Origin: Tubulanus polymorphus
Lineage: Eukaryota; Animalia; Nemertea
Reading direction: 5' to 3'
Assembly (NCBI RefSeq): GCF_964204645.1
Contig: NC_134032.1
Span: 13,442,275-13,506,274, forward strand
Length of the DNA: 64,000 nucleotides
The notes under the pieces: generated by a model
Told to the model about the DNA's origin: nothing
Seen by the model: only the letters and a program-made list of their open reading frames with translations
Database searches by the model: none
Program-made: the position numbers and the translations under genes
Part shown: one piece after another, positions 1,433-63,748 of the stretch
How positions within the stretch are numbered: the stretch's first letter is position 1
Layout: every line of letters starts with the position of its first letter

Positions 1433-4400
1433 TTAATCGGCGCTTGTAACGGAACTCGGAAAGAACGCTCGCGTGAAAATTCCCTTCGTTTTTAGTTTGC
1501 GTTGGTTTTCGCCGTCCTCGCCCATTATTTCGTGAGTCAACGTACGCGCGTCGCGCACGTTTATATCTCCGCGCATCGATACCAAACTGATGATCTGTTC
1601 GGCTCGGAGGTCGTCGTTCTCGGCCAGTAATCCCTGTAAAACCCACGCAGAACACACATTTTAATCTGGGTGCCTACAATTCCTCGATTACTTAAAAACT
1701 TCTCCAAAGTAGAAAATGATTTTTAAGGTGCTTGAAACTCTTAATTCTGTAATTTGAGTTAAATACCTAAAACCTCTTTAAAACTCCATCAATCTTGAGA
1801 AATAGGTAATATAATAAGAAATGTTTGTAGTTGTACTGTAGACTACGCCTAAATTGGTACAGTTGGGACCAGGGGCCAGTTGCACAGTCGTGACTTAAGT
1901 CAAAAAGTGGTCTTAAATCTTAAGACCAGTCTTAAGTTGTTAGATTGGCTATAGAACTAAGTTGGTCTTAGACTAGTCTTAAGTCTAAGCCATGACTATG
2001 CAACCGGCCCCTGGATATTATTTTTACCTGATTAGGCAGTTACCGAATTAGAAAACGAGTTTAGTAGTGTCCACAGTGGAACCTCTATACAGCGAACTTC
2101 ATCGGATCAGTAAAAATGTTCAATATAACCGATAGTTAGATCCAGTATGAAACTAATCAAATTTTCTTACTTTGGACGAAATTCTATATTTGTTATATCC
2201 AATGAATCGTATCTGAGTTCGTTATAATGAGGTTCCACTGTAGGATGAAAGTTTGTTCATAAAACCATTGAATTAATGATTTACCTAGATAAACAGTAGT
2301 AACCCAGTCTACTACAACTGGGATATTAAAATGAAGCAGAAGCTTCCAAGAAATTTGAAACCTTTTCCTTGAAAACTCCTTATATTCAGGAATGACTGAT
2401 CTATAGGGAATTCCCGATTTATTTAACCCAGTGAGAATTCGGACTTTTCGTTTGAATTGTTCTTGCTGGTGACAAATGGTACAAGGAACTGCTTGTGAAG
2501 AAACAAGCCCCACTGATAACAATTCATAAGTCAAAGCATATTCTCTTTTCTCCGCATTTTTTATATAATCGCTTACCGAGATTTCTAGAGACAACATTGA
2601 TGTATCCTTGAGACGAATAACTTCAGCCAGTTTCAACAATGCATCCCACACAGCATTGTCTCCCTGTAATAGAATAAACACTTCCAGATACCGATATATA
2701 TTTGTTTTTACCCAATAAGCATTTACCAAACTAGAAACAGAGTTTAGTAGTGTACAAAACCGCTGAATTCATGGTTTACGGAGATAAACAGTACCGATTT
2801 AGGAGGAGTCTACAGTCATTGAGATATTTGTGCAGATGCTTCCTCAAAATACAGTAGTATTAATTTCAGATCATTTTGGATCAACTGAATTCATCGGGTT
2901 TATGGGAAATTTGGATTAAAAGTTGTTTTCTTGAATATTAATGAATGAATACAGTGTTTTCAATAAGAGCCAGGTCCCAGACCCGTCTGTCGTTTGTAAA
3001 GGACCCGCCGGTTTTTTCAAACCAGCTTTCGTTTCAGGGACTGTGACATATTATGGGACCTTGCTTGTTAATTTCTTATCGAAAACACTGTAATAGACTA
3101 CAAATATTGTCCGGATTAGACCAAAAATCGGATTAAGCAGATCCGGATTAAATGGGTTTAGTATAGTATAGTATAGTATAGTTTGGCTGCATGAAATTTT
3201 CAACATGAAAACTGCAAACAGCCAGATGCGAAGTCAGAGATAAATAATATATACAAACCTCAACCGCACGAGTCGTTAAACGATTGAATAAACTCCTCAT
3301 TTGTTCAGCTTCGCGACTGATTTTGTCCGCCGCCTCCAAACGCTCGTCGTAATTCTTAAAAGTGATTTTTCTGTAAAAAGAACGACACACGACTGTAAGC
3401 AAACTTTCAGCGAATACACTAGACTCCAATTCCCGCAGTGGAACTTCGTTACAACAAATAATAATATCTCGACTTTCGTATAGCGCCTGCTTCATTGTAT
3501 TAATGTTCACCAGCGCTGTCATACCATAAGATTATTATTACCCCAGACCGTAACTAACATACACTCTCATCTTACTCTCCCTGGGGAGATTGTAGTTCCT
3601 AAACTGCACTTTAGCGATACAAGGTACTACGTCTGTCCAGTAGCAAATGTGAATTAATGCCTTGCCTAAGGGCACTACAGAACAGCCGGGGTTCGAACAT
3701 GCAACCTCCCAATTGGAAAGCCCACGCCTTAACCATTCAGCCACATTGCTCCACAAACATCAGGGGCCCGTTGCTCAAAAGTTGGTTAAAGATAACCAGC
3801 GGATAAATACCATAGTAACGACGAAGTTTCAATTGTCACTATGTCAACTATCCACTGGTTAACTCTAAACAACCTTTGAGCATCCAGTCCCTGAGGACTA
3901 GAATTGTAATTCCGTTATCTCTGGGTGAAATCGATCAAACTTCTTTTACGGGACATAGTTATTTGTTATATCTGAGCTCGTTAAAACTGGGGTGTTCCAC
4001 TGTAGATGCCGAATATTTTGTGCTGTGGGGGGTAAGAAGTAAATCCAGCAGTACCGTGCGAACATGGCTTTCAGATAGTCGATGAGAACGCGGTCTTGAG
4101 CTTGCACGATCAATTTTTCGTAGTTTTTCGATTTCAGATGGACGAAATCTTGACAGTAATCTTCTATGGTCAGACAGATCGTATCCAAACAAGCCGAATC
4201 TCCTTGTAACCTACAGCAACGACAGCACGGAAATTAAATTTCATGGAAACCGCATTGCTTTATCCCTAAGTTTTCCTCAAGTAGCGCCTCCCGAATGGAG
4301 GATACTCTTACTCACCATTTTCGCGTGAAAAGCTCTTGAATAAATGCATTCATATCTAAGAAAACTTCATCCAATAAAACTCCACAGCTGAAAAAAAATA

Positions 4401-7400
4401 CCAAGTTTTGAATAAAAATTTAGTTACCTACAGTTTGAGTTCAATCTTTTTTGTGATGAAACTGGGCCCAGGGTCGAATTTAGTGATATAGTTTCAGCTT
4501 AAAACTGTTAAAGTCTAAATTGTTATCCACATCAAAAACATGACTTAAACGCAGGAGGCAACTAAACAGGAAATTTGAGTAAAACTGGACCCGGTTTATT
4601 CATTAGATTTTCATAATCAGTATTCATCTTGTCTCTGAGTTTGTACGAGAGGTTGCTACAAACCGTACCAGGTGGTAGCGATCTTATTGTAACACTCGGC
4701 GATCAGGTTAAACTTATCGATGTTGACTGTTTCGTTGTCGTCTCGAGACTGATATTTATCCTTCAAACGACACTGAATGAAATCACCAATCGACTGGCAA
4801 TTGTTTATATTAGCTAACTGAAAATATATGTACACAGAGGCATCAAAACTAAACTGAAAACCAAGTTTCTCTGTGCTAGTTAAATGAAAAGGAACTTGAA
4901 CACCAGGGGCCAGTAACTCAAAAGTTGGTAATAGTTAACCAGTGGATAGTTGACACCAGTTTCTTACAAGCCTTGGCTTTTTACTGTTCCCTCCTCTCTA
5001 TTTCTGTTATAATGTGTTTCTATATAATGTGAAATGAATTACTTATATTTACTTATACTGAAGTGTATTGATGTATATTAGTGTATTACCAGTAATAAGG
5101 ATTTTACATTATATGTAACTGAAATTGTAAAGGAAAATAAAGACGATATGATATGATATAGGGACCATAAAAATGTTCATCATTACTATAGTATTAATCC
5201 GCCGGTTATCTTTAAACAACTTTTGAACAACTGGTCCTAGATATTTTATCAGCACACTTCCTCCAAAACGTGGTCAAATCGAAACGAAAATACCAACCAT
5301 ATAGTGAAGATAAAACTTCGGTATATTTCTGTTCGCCATGTGCTTATCTCTGTACTTCATCAATTCCGCTATAAACCAATGAAAATTTTCGTTGTAATGA
5401 ATTCGCAATTGTTTCAAAAACGGTTTTTCTCCGACTATCGTACTCACTTTTGTACATTTGGGCGAAGAATTCCATTTCGTCGATGCATAAAATGAGTACC
5501 TTCCCAGTCAGACGTTCGCTGATATGAGCAGCAACCATCATCTAAAGAAAAAAAATATCACACATTCGTGAAACATTTTTTCCATCGTTCAAAGTCTCTA
5601 CAGTACAATAATAACAATTTCAGACGATTTTTTATTGAATTGTTTACAGCAACCAATTTCATAATGCCATAGAATATACAGTGAAACTTGTCTAGGTCAT
5701 CTGAGCTGGGACAATCACTATTTTGGCTTATTGACGAAGACTTAAAGTTAATTGAATAGGAAATACAAGATGCGAGGACTTAAACAATGATGACTTCATG
5801 ACTTAACTGAGTTTGACCATATTTATGGGGACTATCATGCTTTTTGGAAGGATCTCTGGAGGTAATTTGATGGACAAGGGTAGCCATCTTTTCTAAAAGG
5901 GTCTATAAGCTGGGACAATCATTATGACGGCAACTTATCCAAATGAAGACTTACACTTAGTTAATTGAATTGGAAATTAGAAGGACTCAAAAATAGAGAC
6001 AACTGACTTCTATGACGACTTATACAATGATGACTTTACTGAGTTTGTCTGTATCTGTGGTGACTGCTATCATTTTGGGAAGGGTCTTGATGCCAAGCAG
6101 GGTAGCCTTCTTTTCTAAAAGGGTCTATAGATACGATCTAACGATGTCATAGGATGTTTGATACGTACGCTTTGTTCGATCATCTCTATAAGAATGATCG
6201 GTAACGATGTATTATAGAAACCCTCGCTGTCGGCGTCCGGTTCCTGGTCCCGGTACCAATCTTCTTTATCCGTTTTCAGCGAGTTCACCATCCATTCTTG
6301 AAAGTTTTCGCGCATCGTTCGCAAATAACTGTTCGAAGAACAAGAAACAATGATGACTAACAGCTGTGGCAAGCGAGGATTCGCCAGGTGGCTACAGTGT
6401 GGATGACAATCGAAATTCTTCTCAGATTCAATTCAAAAATCTATCCATAATTTCTATGATTGGAATGAGGAATCACACCAAATATGAATGCTGAAGGCAA
6501 AATGAAAGTCTTTTTATAACGCCATTCCTGGGACCAATGAAAAAGATAGCTTTATGAAAAAAAAAAGAATTTCCACTGAATTTGAGTTAGATTGAGCATA
6601 TTCGTCCTCATAAGTGTGCACTGGCATTAAAAAGGATGACATTATAACATTGACTGTAAATCTAAACTAGACTGTAACACCAACTTTTTATTGGAGGCTT
6701 AAGATCTAGATGAAAGTTCATTGCAAATAAGCTTAAATTTGATTGAGTCGTCCTATTGATACATCGATACATATGCCATCTGGCAAGATGGCTGGTGCAG
6801 CACGGACAGGGTCCTTGTTGGAAAGATCCCACTGGTTTGCCAAACGAGGAGGCTCAAGATCTAGATGAAAGTTAATTGCAAATGAACTGAAATTTGATTG
6901 AGTGCTTGATTGACGAATAGCCAACTTGTAGGGTAGCTAATGCAGCACGGGTTCTCATTGAAAAGGACACTCTACTAGGGCATACGGTGTGTGCCGGGAC
7001 CTGATGGAGCCCTCCCCCCCGAGCGTTATGAATAAAGTCTTACGATTCACGAAGTTCGTCGATGGTTTCATCCGGTATAAGCGGCCCCAACACGGACACA
7101 TCGATCTTCGACAGTTCACGATTTCCCATCATTTCCTCCGAACTAAAATACAGAGAGAATCGAGAAAACGATTTCATTTGTAATCAATACACGAACAACT
7201 TGTTGGATACCGTGAGAAATCTAGATTAAACTGCATGTTACCTGTATTCATTTACCCATTTCATCAACGATACAGGTTCATTGCCCTCTAAACCCTGAGC
7301 TTTCAAATCCAACAACTAAAGCCAAGAAACAGAACAGAAAACATTTTATCGGTTAAAAGAATTTAATTAATCAATTATGCACCCTAAACCTGCCCACTCA

Positions 7401-25411: not shown

Positions 25412-28400
25412 GGAGGGACTCCTCGGTAAACTGAATGGAGGAAGAACTTTGAAAAGATGCCAACAGCAGGGGAGACGCGTTGGAATTATAAAGGGCTATA
25501 GATCATAGCTGGAGTTCTCGGTAGACAGTCTGTAGAGTCAGGAGATGATTTATATACTCAACAGACAAAAACAACCCCAGCAGACAATTCATCATCGCTA
25601 ACCAAACCAGACAGTGATTAATGGTCGGTTCTCACTATACACCGTACAGTCTTACCGAGTTCTTATTCTTTCACAAAGTTTGTTCAGATCGAGCGCAAAT
25701 ATTTATGTAAAATGACTAGCACAAATATTCGCATAAAACCAACGCATAAGAAATAAGATCGTTCTTTACCAGATTAGACTAAAACTCTGTTGTGTGACTA
25801 GGAGTCCTAAGAGAGTCTAGTGTATTTCATTTTCAGCCTGGTTTAGGGTAGGATTTCACCAGTCTCAACTTCACAGCAGTAAGAGACTGAGTCTACTGTA
25901 CGTCATGAATTCTTGCTCAGTATTTGACACCAACTCTTTACCGCAGTAAGAGATAGAATCTATAGTAATTTCTCAAACTCTTACTTAGTATTTTAACATC
26001 AACTCGGGGTAGAATTTACCTGTCTCACCTCAACCGCGGTAAGAGACAAGAGTCTACTGTATTTCACAAACTCTTACTCAGTATTTGACACCAACCCGCG
26101 GTAGAATTTCCCCAGTCTCAACTTAACCCTGAGTAAGAGACAGAGTCTACTGTATTTCTCAACTCTTTCTCAGTATTTCAACACCAATTCGGGGTAGAAT
26201 TTACCTATCTCACCTTGACCGCAGTAAGAGACAGAGTCTACTATTTCACAAATTCTTACTCAGTATTTGACACCGACTCAGGATAGAATTTCCCACTCTT
26301 TTCCGAGTAAGATGCACAGTCTACTAACTGGCCAAACTCTGGGTTAGAAGTATAAGTCTCGACTTAACCGCAGCTTGAAGTATAAATCATTTGTCAAATG
26401 TTTATTCCAAGGCTGCAGTAAGAGAATGGCGGAGTCTATACTGTACTTTCATTTCCCTCGCTGATGAATTACGTGAACAGTTACTCCTTCAAAATGTCGG
26501 TTCCACCCCCTGTCACAAATTAAACTCGCCGTCAAAACAACCGACAGATCAAGTCAACACAAATCATAGAACTCGCCCTCGTCGCCCCGCGGGAGGGATG
26601 GTGTGGTATATGATATACAGGCCTCTCAATAGCCCCTGACATATTTATAGCCCGTACAGACAGCTATAAATTCACACATACCCAACACCGGCGTTCATAA
26701 ATCCACTTAATAAAGAGTTGGAGAAGATTTACAACTGACACGGAAATCACTTCTCAATCAGCAACGAGAGGCACCTACTCTATACACTGTGATTTATAGC
26801 GAATTTGATTTATCAACATGCCGCCGCTGTTCGTTTGGTCGTCCTAAAAACCCACAAATGATTGTAGTAGTTAAAGTTACAGAAATATCTACAAACAAAA
26901 TTCCTAAGAGTCGTGAGTCCATGATTCAACTGATGATCATCCTAGACCCAGGACGCAGTGGTCCTCTATTTTGGGTAGAATTAATTTTACGGCAACAGCA
27001 ACAGCTGTACGTGCGAATTAACCTGCAGTGGGTTTGGGGGTCCTACATTCAGAAAATTTTGAATATTTAGCGTTTCTTCAAATGTATTTTAGGTCAATGT
27101 TAGCGAATATTTCATATAGGCCTAAAGAACTCAGGATCGTGCAGGGAGGTTTGCTCACCCCTGATCCCCGGTTATGGGCCCGACTTATAATATCTCTGTA
27201 CTTCCGTTTCCGATTTCAAACCCTGTGTTTTGTTCCCGGTAGGTGTCACTGCGCTGGGGTTTGTAGGAGACACCGAATCAAAACATCTACCAATCAAATA
27301 AATAAGGGAAACATCCGTAACAATTTTAGCTAAACCCATTTCTGAAATTTAATTCATTTCATCTAGCAATCCGACCGGGAGTTACCCGGCTGATGGGTGC
27401 AGGGCTACCCATCCTCCCCCGGCAGGGATTCGAACCTGATGGCATCGAGATTGCCACGGCACGAAACCCTGCCATAATCGACTGTGTGCGCAGATACATG
27501 TGCAGTTCAGATGATGTGATTTTTAGCCAATCAGAAATCCCGTTTTATTTTATCCCGGGTTTTCCCATTTATAGTTCTTCCTTGAAATTTGCCTCAACGA
27601 TTATACAACGAGCAATCTGATTGGTGCCGCCAGTTTTCGTTCGGAAAGCTGCGCATGTACTTGCGCACCCGGTCTACTGATGCAGGGGTTCGTGCCGTGG
27701 CTGAGTGTAGAGATGCCATCAGGTTCGAGTCCCTGTAGAGGGAGGATGGGAGCTACCCAACTGATGGGTATATTTTGAAGCTGGGCTTTGCAACAGTCTG
27801 AATTGGAATGGAAGTAAAAACTTAGATTCAGAACTCATTACAGCCAGATTTCAGAGCAGCTTATTTCTCTCCTGCATCATTTCAAAGAACTCTTTTTTTT
27901 TCTAGAGCAATAATTAAGCCATGACATCGCGATTAAATTTAAGAAAAAAAAACAAACCCTTTAAATTTTTTGATTACGTTGTAAACGATTTAAATCCGCT
28001 ACAAATTTTTTGCGGAAGCAATTTCTGTGTCGATAATCAGTTCAAAAACTACTTTTCAGAACTTTCAAAAGAAAGCACTTTTCAGTACACGGAAGAGAGG
28101 TCTATTCTTATTCCTTATCTTATTTCAGCAGCTCGAGAGCCTGTCTGGAGCTGAACTCTTTTGACGTTGATATGTATATAATTTGAAAGCGGTGTACAAG
28201 ACACAAGTACTTGCGCGGCGCGGGTACTTGAAAATATCACTGACTGACTGATCGGACACTCGATCAGCCCCGGGCTTCGAACTAAACAACCACTCGAAAT
28301 ATCATCGTTCCTACGTCAGACCAGTTCCTGTAGGCCTGATATAGGGTGTAATTCTACCCACGGCCAAGATAACACCGATGATTGACACATTCACTTCACT

Positions 28401-54695: not shown

Positions 54696-56222
54696 TCATA
54701 ATAAAATTCGCTTGTCCTGTGAATGTATCATTGTTGGTTTCCATGGCGCCCATCGATTCACGTTCTCTGGCGATAGGGTTTCCGCGTTTACAGAAGGCGC
54801 TATCGTGTAGTGTGATGATAGCGAATGATAGGCGGCAAACAGCCCGGTTTTCACAGCCAGATCGAGTTCATGACCTTTCAGTATGGAACTAATAATTCCG
54901 GCATTCAAACTTGAAAAAAATCAATAATCATTTATACTATAAAAAGGTTTCATTTTCGTTTCAAACCATTCCTTTAAAAAAAAGCTTAAAAAGTTGTTTC
55001 AAAAGGTGTCTCTTAAGTCAACAATCGGGCTCAGCAGTTCCTTATCTAACTTATCTAGAGTTAACCATCAAGACCGAGTTCCACAGGCTCAGTTCATTGA
55101 AAATAAACTCTGAATCAATTGTTTACTCACAACTGTGGAACTGGGTCCAGGGGGGTCATCAGTTGCTCAAAAGCCAATGAGCTTCGCTATATCCACAAGT
55201 TAGTTCTAGCCCTATAGAAAATGTACGTCAATTTTAAATGGCTAATTACCTGTCTCCAGCGCCAGATACGCTGACTATATTATCCGGTCTTTGCTCTTCT
55301 GTGCATGGGTTGTAATGTACGATTGTCAAACCGTTTCTTTCCTTAAAAACGAGGAAAAAAAACGAAAATATAAAGATTTTCAACATCAAGTAACATTATC
55401 ACTGCTTTAGATACATCCAGTCAGTTCTAAGCTACTGGCTTAACTCATTATTTCAAGTTGATCATTTTGATAAAATTTTCAGTGAAATCAGATTCAAAAC
55501 CTTGGAACTAGAACTTGAGCCAAAATAAATCGAATTGTCGCTAACTACACCTGATACCACAGTTTTGAGCTATAGGTAACTCGTTGTAAAAACTGCATGA
55601 TATTCAAACCAGTTTGTTTGTTAACTGCACCCAGGGCCCAGTTTCACAAAAAGGTTTAACACTTAAATCGATTTAATTTCTTCATTAATTCAGTTTATCT
55701 TAAATCGATTTAGGCCTTAATCCTTTTTGTGAAACTGCACCCAGGAGTTCAAACCGGCCATTTTGGACACCGGGCTGCTATAATTCTCGTGTCTTTTTTA
55801 CTAACCTGTAGAAGTTTTCCTCTGACAGGAACCGGATGGTCCATCTCAGTTCGTCGACACACCACTAAACCGTTAGAACCGATAGTTACAAATACGAACG
55901 GTACAACATCCAGCACCGGTCCGATCCTCATTAGAATATCTTCAAAATCTTCTTCTTTCGTTTTAACCATACCTTCAAAAAGAAAGTCGAGATGAAAACA
56001 CGACCGAGATCACAAAATTCAAAACAAAATACCAACGTTCATAAACGTATTTATGATACGCACCTCCGGAAAGATCGGGTATTTGCTGGCCGGTGATTGT
56101 AGCATGGATGACTAAAAGCTCTTTTAGATTTGGTGAAACGTAAGTTAAATGTTTCCAAGTCCCGTTCGTCGTCTTTCTAAACGCTTTGCCGGCCTTGTGT
56201 ATATCTGTAGGTTCAAACCAAA
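54696..56222 (-). CDS. 3' exons of a PfkB-family kinase, probably the bifunctional pseudouridine glycosidase/kinase (5' part not found in the window)
   Basis: Exons: 56064-56222 (WFEPTDIHKA..TYVSPNLKEL); 55806-55972 (VFVTIGSNGL); 55250-55341 (IVSVSGAGDS, PfkB signature); 54696-54909 (LNAGII..RWAPW). The first exon begins at an acceptor in phase 1. Confidence 0.82.
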
Positions 56223-56886: not shown

Positions 56887-59800
56887 ATGGCCCAGGCGAC
56901 GTTCGTAGCGGCGTTCGCTTGTTGTTTCGTGGCGTTAGTTTTAAATATAATCGCGTTCGTTAGCCCGTACTGGTATCAATCCTGGCCCAGAGTTCACAGT
57001 CGATTCGTTAGACTGGGATTATGGGAGGCTTGTTTCGACGGTTATACCCACCCTCAGGATTACAATAGTAAATCGTACGTCGGTTGCTGGTGGGTTTTCT
57101 CGCACGAGTACAGACCCATCTGGGAATGGCTTTGCCCGCGTAAGTATTCGAAGTATTTTCGATGCCGATTCGAACTTGTAAACGGGGTGAATTTGACCTC
57201 GAAAAAGTGGATATTTTTTTCCACTCAGAAAAGTGTAAACAAAATGGCGACGAGTTTGAAATACCAGAATTTAGGTCATGATATAAATAAATGATATCTT
57301 GTAGTAGATTTAGGGGTAGATTTAGTATTTATTCAGTCAAATCATGATAACGATAATTTGAGCGAACAAACCTAGCCTTGAATGTAGGGATTTCAAGTGA
57401 AAATTTTCCAAACACTATAGAAACAATTTAAAGGGCCTAAATGAAAGAAGGGTTTAATATAAGATCATAGCAATTTACAGAACTAAAATCGGTTGAGCCG
57501 TTCAAAAGTTACGAAGGAATTTGTCGGCTGAAAATCGCACTTCTCAGCCATAGAGTCTTCATTAGGAAATGAACTAAAGGTCATAAGGTCAAATGGTGAC
57601 CAAATGATCAATTTCTTAGTTAAGAAACAATTGAAAGTAGAAAAGAAACTAGTATATCTTTGGGAATTGTCATCCGATTTCAATCAAACTTGGGGAAAAA
57701 TCAGAATAATAGTTTCCCTATTGATAATAAAACTTAAACTAATAATTAATTAAGCCAATTAAGGGTAATTAGCTTAATTAATTGGCTCATTGCCAGATCC
57801 AGGTATTCATCAGCTAAAAGCAGAGGATAAATGTTTACTTATTTGTGTTACAACTTTACAGGGATAAATATATGCGACCATAAATTGTCGCAGACCTCGC
57901 AACACATAGAAATTGGTTGCCATGGTAACCACTATAGCAACAATTGATTCTTGGGATCTATATGGTTGCCGGCGCTCGGAAAGTATTTCAAACCCAAAAA
58001 CGCATCATGATTGGTATCAAAATGACCGTATTTATCCCAGCTTCCTCTATTTAATCAGGATTCATGCATTCAGTTGATTGGTAAGAAAATATTAGAGATC
58101 GAATAAGAATTCTTGAATTTCAAATTTAGGCCAAGTTGCGTTAGGCCTATAGGATCTTCATAGCTGAAGAAGATCCAGAAGGAACCTTTATGGTATATAA
58201 AGTACTCGAAGAAGGATTTATTAATTTACACTTTTATCTTTTGCAGGTGACTCCAAGAAATATGGTGAAGTTAAATAAGCCGAACCCATGTTGAAAAAAT
58301 CATTATGCGAAATGTAGAATTGTAGGCTAATAAAGCTTAGGCCTACCACTGGCTGAAGGGAGTAATTTAAACTGCAACCTTCTTATCTGAATAAGCTTCA
58401 ATAGATAAGTTAATGGATTTGTGGATTGAGAATTTGATTGCTTGTAATTAATAAAATACAGCAATTAGAAATTTTGTGGCGGCCCAAGTCCAAAGATGTT
58501 CATAAGAGTTTGGCCATTTCAATTGTAGCTTATAGTTGATTAGTAAAACATAAATAAATTATTATTTGATAAATAAATATTGTATTTTCATTTCAGTTTA
58601 GTTGTTATATGGTCAGTTTTATTGGGGAGAGGCAGGGGGCTCATCTAGCTGCTTTTTCAGTGTGATTGATGAGCCGAGCGAGGTAGGCCTAAAAGGCCTT
58701 CAGAATAACACACGGGATTTCTTTAGCTTCATCGGTTACATCAACCCCAAAGTTGCTCAAAATAAAATTATTATCATAAACTTCATTGATCCTGGGAGAA
58801 AATGACTTAAAACACCTTAAAACTAGCGTAAACAGCTGATTTACACATGTAAACAAACGCTAACGCGAACCCGGAAGTGAATGAAAATGCCCGGATGTAG
58901 CAATTTTTTCGATACTTCCCAACTTTACAGCAATTTCCGGGGAAGACGGCTTAACGAATCAAACTAAAACCTTTTGCTATATACACTAAAACTACTATAT
59001 TTTTACACCTGGGGGAGAACTAATTTCTAAATTTCATAATTTGATGAAATATATTGCATTTAAAACTTTATAGTGTCGCAAAATCGGTCAAATTGCCGGT
59101 ACAAACAAGTACGGCATACCTGGATGTCAATCAAGAACTTTTGAAAACACCTGTGAAGGTTTCGTGATCCCCAGTCCCGCCCCTTTTTTGCGAGATCGCC
59201 TAGAGGTTGGGCATCTCAAAACTGCATTTTTCGAAATCCGCGGTGAAGAGTACACGCGCACCTGTCAATCAACAATCTATAGTTGGCTAGAGTCCAACAG
59301 CTTGTAACTCGCGAACTACGCCGCGCATCAACATCGAATTTTCAACACAGTACAAGATGCTTATTATCTTCCCTCGAAAATTTAGTTCAAGTAAATCGGA
59401 TGACAATTACTGAATTTATCAAGTTCATAACTTTTGAAGTGGGAAAAAACGGCACTATGGCCGGTTTTGATCACGTGATCTGAAAACCCTATTGAATGTA
59501 CTGATAAATGCTGAAACAAATTCAAAATGCATACATGACTCATGACTATAACAAGTCAATAAATGACAATATGTAAAAATCATTGGGACCCACGCCCCTT
59601 TGTTGTATGCATTATTGAGTCAGATGTGATTGCAAAATATTAAAGTGTACAGCCCAAAATCTGGGGGCATTATAAATATTAATGTTATAAGGCTTACCTT
59701 ATTAAATAATTAAATCATAAGTTATACACTAATACTGTGAATCTGTCAGCTTACACAGTGTCAGATATGGACAGGCCTATTGTGTAAGCTCTTGACTCAA

Positions 59801-60262
59801 TAACCAACAAACCACCAAGTCTTAAAAAACTTCATTAATGTGATTAATGTGAGCAATTAAAGGAACAAGGCCCTTCCCCTTCTTGTTTACAGACTGTGCA
59901 CTTATTACAATTAAGGCCAATTCAAGATTGCCCCTGTCATTGGGAAAAATAACTGTCTAGTCAACACCAATGGTTCTCTTGTAGTAGTTCCCTTGAAGAA
60001 GTTGGCAAGTCAAATCTGCAGAACTGCATCCCCTGTCGAAGATGAAAAGGCCCTTACAAAATGTATCATGTATTCAATGTCTAAATCGCATTATTTCAAC
60101 TATTTTCAGCCTGGTTCATCAGCGTTCAAGTGATGATGACGTTGAACGTGTGCATTCATTTAGTTGTCAATTTCATCGTGATGATGGCGTTCCTGAAATG
60201 TTGTCCGCCGAAAAATCTGAAGAAGATTCTGCTGACGATGACGGGCCTGATGTTCTTCTCGG
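56887..60262 (+). CDS. Invertebrate claudin (PMP22/claudin family), shared exons 1 (56887-57139) and 2 (60110-60262)
   Basis: TM1, AFVSPYW, the claudin signature LGLWEACF..GCWW, and WLCP|PWFISVQ joined in phase 1. Exon 2 ends TCG G|gtaagt (phase 1). Confidence 0.9.
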
Positions 60263-61248
60263 GTAAGTTCAGATTTTTTAGATTTGACACAAATACGGAA
60301 GACTCTAAGCGACGTGGAATCTTTTTAGATTGACTCCGGTGAAACAAGTATTTCAGGCTAATCCTCGTAATCAATAGTGGCCGTCAAACTTGGTATCATG
60401 GGTCCAATTTGGCGTCTTCCAGAAGGATTTAAGATTTCATTGACTGTAGGTGGATGCTAAAAATTCAAATGAAACATGACAAATTTCTTGATTTCACCAT
60501 TAGTACATCTGATGTTAGATCTAATTCGCTCCAGCGTTTTCTTATGAGAAGACGGCGAACTAGGCATTGACGCAGAACACTGACAATGTCGAGGATCTCG
60601 CATCTTGAGAATACACTCTCTAGAATTGTGTAAATCGAGCCTTAAGTAGCTCATGAATTCAGTTACTCAAGACCTCTTGAACCTAAAGAATTCTCATAAA
60701 GCAACCAGAGATCATTAAATTTCAGTGGTTTAGATTTCAGAGTTTCGATAATTTTTCCTTCGATCGCGACTTCTCTTCCTGGGAATAAGAAACAACCGAA
60801 AAAAAGAAAACGATATCGAATTCCCACACGTATTTCATTATTAACATGCTCTTCCAAGATTGATTTGAGGAAAGAAAAATATTCGAAATACTTCTAACGG
60901 ATGTGAAACAGGTTGGAAACAAGTTCCCAGGAAGGAAGAGTGTGTGGTAGTAATGCTGTGTGGGAATTTGAGGGGCATTGATGAAATATGTACGCATCGA
61001 ATTACGCAGAGTTTACAAACACTGCTGGTACGGTCAAACTCGCTGAAGTCGTGGACTCTTAATTCAATTAAAATCAAATCATGCATGAATAAAGCAGAGG
61101 TGGGTTTAGATCCCGAGAAGCACTCAAGCTGGAGAATTGACTCTAATAATGTGACGCCTCTGAAAGCGAGTTTGACTCTAGTAGAATGCGTACATATAAT
61201 TCATTCGAGCTCTCGCGTTGACATTTCGGTCGTTTCTTATTTTTTCAG

Positions 61249-61484
61249 CGTTTCTGTTCCTGTTGAACGTGACGATATTCGGCATCCAAGCGAACGACCT
61301 GTCGTGGGATCGCGACTGGATGCCGTGGCCGAAGATAAACTATCTGTCGTGGTCGTACGGTTTCGCTTGCGTCGCCGGCTTTCTTAGTTTCTTCGCCGGC
61401 ATTTTGTTGTACAAAGTCGCGAAGCGTCTGCCCGATAAAAGTCAGCAAGCCGAACGCGAAATGCCAGACGCTCCGCGATTCTAG
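61249..61484 (+). CDS. Claudin alternative last exon A
   Basis: tttttcag|CG, phase 1. Encodes AFLFLLNVTIFG..DRDWMPWPKINYLSWSYGFA..APRF*. Confidence 0.85.
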
Positions 61485-62045
61485 TCTGGCGTCACGTGGC
61501 GTATCATTTTTCAATTTCTTCCCCGAAGGTAAAGAAAAAAGGCTCCGTTTGTTTTTCAGTCGAGGGAGAAATTTGAGCAGACGGCGGGACCTCGTTTAAA
61601 CGACCTCTGAATCAACGATAAACCTATCATTTCATTTCAGTCGGACAATTTGAACAATTTCATACTCGTAACAAACTATCAGTTTATAGCGAGCCAAACA
61701 TATTTACTGGTCCCCTGAAATGTGTGTAACGAGGTTCCGCTGTAGTATCAAGATGAAATAGAGATTTTAGGCAAAACATTGATACCTTGCTTCTCAATCC
61801 TGCTGGGCTGACCCTACCGGCTGCCTTTCTATCCTGTAAATTGCTTTTAAAATTACGATGATGTCAACCATGAAAAGACCCACCCGGCTATTGAAGTGAA
61901 CTGATTACAAATTTATCGCAGTTAACAAAATGATCCAGTCGGTTAGGAGAAACAAGGTATCATTTTCAAGAAAAACCTGGCATTAGACAAGGACGTGGTT
62001 TATCGGGGCTAACTGTGTTTGAATGAAATCGTATTTGTATTTTAG

Positions 62046-62971
62046 GTTTCCTATTCGTTCTGTGCGTACTTATTTTCGGCATCAAATCCGAAGATCGTAT
62101 GTGGATGTATCGTCCCGATCACAACACGCTCTCCTGGTCGTACGCGGTCGCCATATTCGCGACGCTCGCTACAATAATAGCGGCCGTCATTCTACTCGGC
62201 GACGCCCGTAGATTACCCGATTATCGTAAAGAGGCTCCGATCATCGACCCGATGGGCGGTAGTATGCCGCGTATGTTCGTACCGCATTCCCACGGGCCCG
62301 GCTCGTACATCGGACCCGGTCCCGGCGGCCCCGCGTATACGGGTCCCGGCGATAAACCGAGTCCGACCGATTCGAAATCTCACGATTTCCCGACCGGTCC
62401 GCCGTCCGAACACGGCGGTCCGCCGTCGGAGTACGGAGACAAGAGGATGCCTCCGCCGGGTATGGTGCTCAGTCGAGGACCGCCGTCCGAGGCTGGAGAT
62501 TACGGTCCGCCGATGCGAGGACCTCCGTCCGAGTCCGGAGATTTCCGCGGACCACCGACGCGTGGTCCTCCGTCGGAGTCTGGTGAAATGCGGTACCCGC
62601 CTCCCCATATGAGAGGACCTCCGTCCGAGTCCGGTGATATGCGCGGACCACCGATGCGTGGTCCTCCGTCGGAGTCGGGTGAGATGCGTTACCCGCCGCC
62701 TCATATGAGAGGTCCTCCGTCCGAGTCCGGAGAGATGAGGTATCCGCCTCCGATGATGCGCGGACCGCCGCCGCGACACATGATGCGCGGACCGCCGCCG
62801 CAGCACATGCGTCCTCCGTTCGGTCACCCGATGTATCGCGGACCACCTCCGCGTGGTCCGCCCTACGGTCCGCCGGGTCGAATGATGTATCCTCCTCCGC
62901 ACATGAGACAACCACCGCCGCAGCACATGAGACTGGATACACCACGAGGTCCCCAGGAGTCGTCCATGTAG
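62046..62971 (+). CDS. Claudin alternative last exon B with a long Pro/Gly/Arg-rich tail
   Basis: ttttag|GT, phase 1. Encodes GFLFVLCVLIFG..DRMWMYRPDHNTLSWSYAVA, then RGPPSESG repeats, ending ESSM*. Confidence 0.85.
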
Positions 62972-63461
62972 AATTACACGCGTCGTATCTGTATATAAAT
63001 ATTTGTATTTTTATGGCGATTGTGAAAACTGGTGCCGATTGTTGTAAACTACAGTAAACCTCGACTGACGCGAGTTCAAATCAGAAAATACACTTAACTT
63101 AACCTTACTCAGGATTTACTGGGACCGGCAGAATTGTAAAGCGCAATCAAAGAATATGGATTGGAAAAAATAAAGAGGACAAGGAAATCAAAATATTATT
63201 TTGTCCTTGTTAAGTCTTGAGTTCAGTAAAGGCAAGGTTAATTGTATTAGGTTTTTTTCTAGACCTTTCTTCGATTCCTTAAAAACTCCTTTGAAATGGA
63301 TGCTTGTGCTTAGAGTGCCTTATATCCGGGATGACTGATCTGTAGGAACGGACCCGGTTTCAGTAGAGGTTTACTGTAATCGATAATTTCAAGAGCTCGT
63401 TAGTAATTATATTTTCTAATGTTAATTAATGTTAATGAATGAATGATTTGTATCGTTGTAG

Positions 63462-63748
63462 GCGTGTTACTCACATTGTCGATCGTCGTGTTCGGAATAC
63501 GTTCCCTCGATCGTATCTGGCAACCGAGGCCGGACGATAACTTCTTGTCGTGGTCGTACGGGTGCGCGGTCGGCGCCGCCGCGTTCGCGCTCATCACCGC
63601 GTATCTGTTGCTGCAACAATACTGGGTCGAGGTCGGCGATAAGGAAATACCGGCCGGTCCCGGAGCCGAGTCGCTAACGATGACTCGGCAGCCGGAGAAG
63701 ATTCCGCTCGGTAGCATGCGCTCGGAGAAGAGATCGATCGATGTTTGA
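63462..63748 (+). CDS. Claudin alternative last exon C
   Basis: ttgtag|GC, phase 1. Encodes GVLLTLSIVVFG..DRIWQPRPDDNFLSWSYGCA..SIDV*. Confidence 0.8.

Follow-up and report, generated by a model that had tools for sequence, protein, structure and literature searches.

A claudin gene of Tubulanus polymorphus with a tandem array of three probable alternative last exons

A claudin gene of the ribbon worm Tubulanus polymorphus, LOC141909813, consists of a single first exon, a single second exon and three homologous phase-1 terminal exons in tandem, referred to here as A, B and C. The gene lies in a stretch of 64,000 nucleotides (nt) on contig NC_134032.1 of the RefSeq assembly GCF_964204645.1 (positions 13,442,275 to 13,506,274), hereafter the window; positions below are counted from its first letter. 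We consider it probable, at roughly 80%, that this is one claudin gene with tandem alternative last exons and that all three are used. A single promoter would yield a transcript in which exon 1 is spliced to exon 2, and the phase-1 donor at 60263 would then be joined to one of the acceptors of the exons beginning at 61249, 62046 and 63462. Whichever exon is chosen would complete the four-helix fold with a different end of the third transmembrane helix (TM3), second extracellular loop (ECL2) with its β5 strand, TM4 and cytoplasmic tail, the first loop (ECL1) being common to products of about 213, 443 and about 230 amino acids (aa) from A, B and C, respectively. Each terminal exon holds a stop codon, so the choice is mutually exclusive by construction and only one of them can code.

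All exons lie on the forward strand of the window. The coding part of exon 1 (56887 to 57139; 253 nt) starts with ATG, encodes TM1 and ECL1, and ends in phase 1 at a GTAAGT donor. Exon 2 (60110 to 60262; 153 nt, phase 1 to phase 1, between AG and GTAAGT) encodes TM2, the intracellular loop and the first half of TM3, and ends at the donor common to the terminal exons. Each of these supplies the rest of TM3, ECL2 and TM4, followed by a tail: exon A (61249 to 61484; 236 nt) carries a 4-residue insertion in ECL2 and a 22-aa tail ending in APRF; exon B (62046 to 62971; 926 nt) has a tail of about 250 aa that is 28% proline, contains about seven imperfect repeats and ends in ESSM; and exon C (63462 to 63748; 287 nt) has a 42-aa tail ending in SIDV. 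The three cores are 43–49% identical to one another and the tails are unrelated. All three exons have a length of 3n+2 and an upstream AG with a pyrimidine tract, and each aligns to positions 134–190/192 of the Pfam domain Claudin_2 (PF13903), the last third of the domain. The arrangement proposed in an earlier sequence-only reading of this DNA, in which exon 2 ends in phase 1 before three homologous phase-1 exons with their own stops, is thereby confirmed. Exon B is identical (100%) to the corresponding part of the RefSeq protein XP_074656550.1 (443 aa, LOC141909813), a model built from exons 1, 2 and B with A passed over. The junctions to the other two, 60262–61249 and 60262–63462, we infer from the sequence. 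A model with a common last exon was rejected, as neither A nor C contains a GT[AG]AG donor.

Membership in the claudin family is indicated by several features. Exon 1 bears the W-GLW-C-C claudin signature, which is invariant or nearly so across the family alignment, and Claudin_2 is matched exon by exon (E-values of 1.6e-6 for exon 1, 3e-7 for A, 3.3e-5 for B and 1.2e-4 for C). The domain is present in XP_074656550.1, and the profile-search matches carry the names pck/pickel. A predicted fold was considered for the closest homologue, P0001, which is 68% identical over exon 1; it has a predicted local distance difference test score (pLDDT) of 94 and forms the claudin four-helix bundle, with TM3 spanning the boundary between exons 2 and 3 and the last exon contributing the ECL2 strand and TM4. 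Its best PDB match is mouse claudin-15, with transmembrane AMPA receptor regulatory proteins (TARPs) close behind, and the fold match alone does not separate claudins from TARP-like proteins. Judged from these features the gene is a claudin of the protostome pickel/sinuous/kune-like type. PF13903 matches on two other contigs (C4 and C12) were set aside; they are distant relatives that fit the subfamily exon profiles poorly. The protein would presumably act at septate junctions, its tails recruiting different scaffolds, and the C-termini of B and C, read by eye, are PDZ-ligand-like. In vertebrate claudins, ion selectivity depends mostly on ECL1, trans contacts between cells on ECL2 and the binding of PDZ scaffolds on the tail (PMC9647347); by analogy, these roles may carry over to the Tubulanus protein.

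The terminal exons show no sign of decay. Between copies, the proportion of nonsynonymous differences (pN) is 0.39–0.41, compared with 0.57–0.84 for synonymous differences (pS), a ratio that is only indicative since synonymous sites are near saturation. Third-position G+C (GC3) is 0.63–0.77 in A, B and C, against 0.34–0.40 G+C in the flanking introns. On the family last-exon profile the three exons score 70–76 bits (70–72 bits over 55 codons), within the 56–107 bits of last exons in complete genes elsewhere. When neutral drift was simulated at 0.25 changes per site, the AG and reading frame survived in 9–20% of trials per exon and the observed score was never reached. The profile scores and the simulation exclude long-dead pseudo-exons. 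These measures indicate that A, B and C are old, intact and under constraint; a very recent loss of use may still be compatible with them.

The array is also complete as it stands. We searched the chromosome-scale assembly (268 Mb in 77 contigs, the window lying on contig C8) with three queries, namely exon A, exon 1 and a family profile built from 22 sequences, and recovered exactly one first, one middle and three last exons, all at LOC141909813. No second front half, whether exon 1 or exon 2, was found anywhere in the genome, and profile scans of the A–B gap (561 nt) and the B–C gap (490 nt) detected neither a copy nor a remnant of either exon, in agreement with the earlier observation that no extra exon 1 or 2 intervenes; B and C thus lack private upstream exons. 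Exon-specific profiles run over the window and 40 kb downstream, together with the three whole-genome searches, gave no fourth terminal exon. The gene lies wholly antisense within one 11-kb intron (56223 to window-equivalent 67406) of a host gene for a pseudouridine-metabolizing bifunctional protein (Indigoidine_A and PfkB domains), with a host exon on the reverse strand at 56064 to 56222 (lower boundary approximate) and the next beginning at window-equivalent 67407. The enclosing intron bounds the array and, together with these searches, shows the suggestion of further exons beyond 64000 to be wrong.

To place the array among its relatives, we compared claudin loci across protostomes. Both phase-1 introns are common to all family loci read, which makes the three terminal exons exchangeable modules; one mite gene has an additional intron within exon 1. 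The loci differ in layout. Lineus longissimus carries three complete genes, and no last-exon array, in the corresponding intron of the host gene, where GCA_001039355.2, which we take to be Lingula anatina, carries two complete claudin genes; in Paralvinella, pieces of that host gene flank three complete genes, and in the chiton Liolophura a tandem series numbers at least four. Argonauta combines three first exons with a single middle and a single last exon, and Octopus RefSeq isoforms X2/X3 differ in exon 1 (32% identical) and are 100% identical in the remainder. Two first exons, lying beside PfkB pieces, occur in the mite Dermatophagoides; in a relative, the first of these is linked to the shared exons in an assembled contig. 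In Owenia fusiformis (CAIIXF020000001.1:61242024-61263523), three first, one middle and three last exons all have phase-correct splice sites, and the locus is annotated as one chimeric model plus three orphan fragments; synteny of this array with the host gene could not be established. A last-exon array is therefore not conserved across ribbon worms and has a parallel in an annelid. The Owenia 3 x 1 x 3 locus, with up to nine products, is arguably more striking than that of Tubulanus. Antisense nesting in the pseudouridine-metabolizing gene was seen in the nemertean pair, the brachiopod, an annelid and apparently the mite, and is apparently old in protostomes.

The origin of the array is only partly visible in trees. 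For Tubulanus exon 1, the nearest sequences are those of Lineus genes 1 and 2 and P0001. Last-exon trees, built on 59 columns, give no resolved branching: neither one clade for the Tubulanus exons (p 0.32) nor a placement of C beside the third-gene type of Lineus (p 0.20) is rejected, and the same placement for B is borderline (p 0.051). A single clade of all six Tubulanus and Owenia last exons was rejected (p 0.013), and no one-to-one pairing between the two species appears in the trees; independent origins of the two arrays seem likelier from these sequences. The Tubulanus array may have arisen by duplication of the last exon, or by loss of front halves in an older gene cluster.

The choice among the exons would most likely be made by 3' splice-site competition coupled to 3' end formation. 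Of 14 pyrimidine-tract positions, 12 are pyrimidines at acceptor A, 10 at B and 8 at C; A is also the nearest to the donor, yet the RefSeq model joins B. Intron 2 contains a predicted multibranch RNA fold of 470 nt (60779 to 61248, forward strand; z −6.4), more stable than any of 100 shuffles and second among the 35 windows sampled. Its outer helix (60779–60801 with 61224–61248) is predicted to pair the pyrimidine tract and AG of exon A with a probability of 0.92, and the core of this helix persists when the whole pre-mRNA region is folded. Such a fold would weaken the nearest acceptor with the best consensus and leave B or C usable, although we regard masking of acceptor A as somewhat less likely than not. 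The 470-nt stretch has no other copy in our searches and no Rfam match. Pairing to the A–B or B–C gaps, as in docking-site and selector systems of the PGRP-LC type, did not rise above shuffles. Downstream, candidate poly(A) signals follow exon B at 62994 (TATAAA) and 63169 (AATAAA; together spanning 62994 to 63174), and exon C has a strong poly(A) context, with a probable 2-kb 3' untranslated region (UTR) and AATAAA at window-equivalent 65777. The 63169 AATAAA sits in a predicted fold (z −3.4) closed by a 19-bp stem (63050–63068 with 63360–63378); this inverted repeat, 63050–63378, has TA at both ends and the look of a mariner-type miniature inverted-repeat transposable element, and no other full copy was found.

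Several observations weigh against use of all three exons or against the proposed means of choosing between them. The A and C forms were not found in the protein collection, where the B form, listed without an isoform suffix, is the sole match from T. polymorphus, and Lineus, as noted, keeps complete genes at the matching position. By sequence inspection, canonical poly(A) hexamers occur after B and C and none after A; a separate poly(A) site for A is doubtful, and the transcript of the A form may run on, with B and C included in a long 3' UTR. The A–B gap is mostly old repeat DNA, including two dispersed repeats (61586–61744 and 61762–61966) about 72% identical to other nearby copies. As for the fold, a nearly equal stability (z −6.1) is predicted for the opposite strand, that of the host-gene transcript, the acceptor-A duplex by itself is no better than shuffles (p 0.41), and no similar fold precedes the Owenia acceptors. 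One alternative is that B alone is used and that A, C or both are leftovers that recently lost their use and have not yet decayed. The sole RefSeq protein found, which uses B, the predicted pairing of acceptor A and the pyrimidine tract of C, the weakest of the three, all fit it, but copies that differ as much as these, at nearly saturated synonymous sites, still score as working exons, so that two of them would have had to fall silent very recently; the strong poly(A) context after C also speaks against it, and we judge this alternative unlikely.

Less likely again is that B or C is transcribed from an internal start of its own, which would yield a half-claudin of two helices, or is joined by trans-splicing to a different transcript. 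An in-frame ATG does lie at 63443, 19 nt before acceptor C, but in the intron flank of that acceptor, and B has no in-frame ATG; all three exons begin at the family's conserved mid-TM3 intron position, and the genome offers no other front half from which to splice. About as unlikely is an assembly error in which complete tandem genes had their near-identical first two exons collapsed: relatives do have complete tandem genes at the matching locus, two of the Lineus genes being about 90% identical, but the stretch is free of gaps in a chromosome-scale assembly, and unequal exon counts recur in Owenia, octopods and the mite, the first-exon cases being backed by transcript or RefSeq evidence.

A gene with tandem alternative last exons therefore remains the best reading of the locus, as the old, constrained exons, the lack of any other front half, the RefSeq junction of exon 2 to B and the Owenia parallel suggest. 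The earlier reading is supported in part: a constant front combined with a variable ECL2, TM4 and tail behind one promoter remains the best account, the further exons that it suggested are absent, and its likening to protocadherins and UGT1 needs replacing. Clustered protocadherins and UGT1 have variable first exons chosen by promoters. They resemble the Tubulanus gene in joining variable duplicated exons to a constant part; Tubulanus, with one first exon and one promoter, varies only three exons at the opposite end and shows no sign of stochastic choice, and it is Argonauta, Owenia and the mite that have the protocadherin/UGT1-type layout. Among vertebrate claudins, the isoforms CLDN10a and CLDN10b arise through duplicated alternative first exons. 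CLDN18.1 and CLDN18.2 are likewise produced by alternative first exons (PMC9153115). Both genes obtain isoforms with different extracellular parts from duplicated exons, but they swap the first exon (TM1 and ECL1) and keep the tail, whereas Tubulanus keeps ECL1 and swaps ECL2, TM4 and the tail; the octopod and mite loci are CLDN18-like, and Owenia varies both ends. Septate-junction claudins of protostomes (pickel/megatrachea, sinuous and kune-kune; PF13903) belong to the same family by profile, signature, fold of the closest homologue and intron positions, a comparison with the named fly genes that stops at family level; unlike Tubulanus, they are usually separate complete tandem genes, as in Lineus, Paralvinella, Lingula and Liolophura. 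A closer analogy is Drosophila's 3' variable region, which involves the 3' splice site and 3' end formation and not promoter choice. PGRP-LC, CG42235 and pip have tandem mutually exclusive terminal cassettes behind a common donor, with the choice tied to 3' end formation and RNA structure implicated (PMC6191721, PMC9013439). Tubulanus shares the duplicated, mutually exclusive terminal cassettes behind one donor, but its cassettes are single exons of a four-pass junction protein, and its only predicted fold would mask the first acceptor rather than activate it, unlike the Drosophila docking and selector systems. Our literature search, thin on subscription papers, turned up no description of alternative last exons in a claudin, nor one of a 3 x 1 x 3 layout.

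Two observations lie apart from the claudin gene. The downstream extract contains, in its own numbering, open frames at 1767–2873 (forward strand, 369 codons) and 4180–5247 (reverse strand, 356 codons) that appear by eye glycosyltransferase- and methyltransferase-like. Within the window, 27404–27753 forms a highly stable long hairpin (z about −16 from 10 shuffles) without an Rfam match.

These data point to an annotation gap, in that the protein collection lacks two probable Tubulanus isoforms. More broadly, one family presents four layouts (complete tandem genes, variable first exons, variable last exons, and both), and so offers a compact comparison of gene duplication with exon duplication. 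It is conceivable, though we hold this as speculation, that protostome claudin clusters repeatedly become exon cassettes and thereby form a combinatorial junction code, in which Owenia could pair ECL1 and ECL2/tail independently to make up to nine claudins, and Tubulanus could switch ECL2 and tail by tissue by concealing the first acceptor within an RNA fold. Overall, with ECL1 fixed and ECL2 and tail swapped, the Tubulanus gene would provide a natural chimera series for the function of each half of the claudin in invertebrate junctions.

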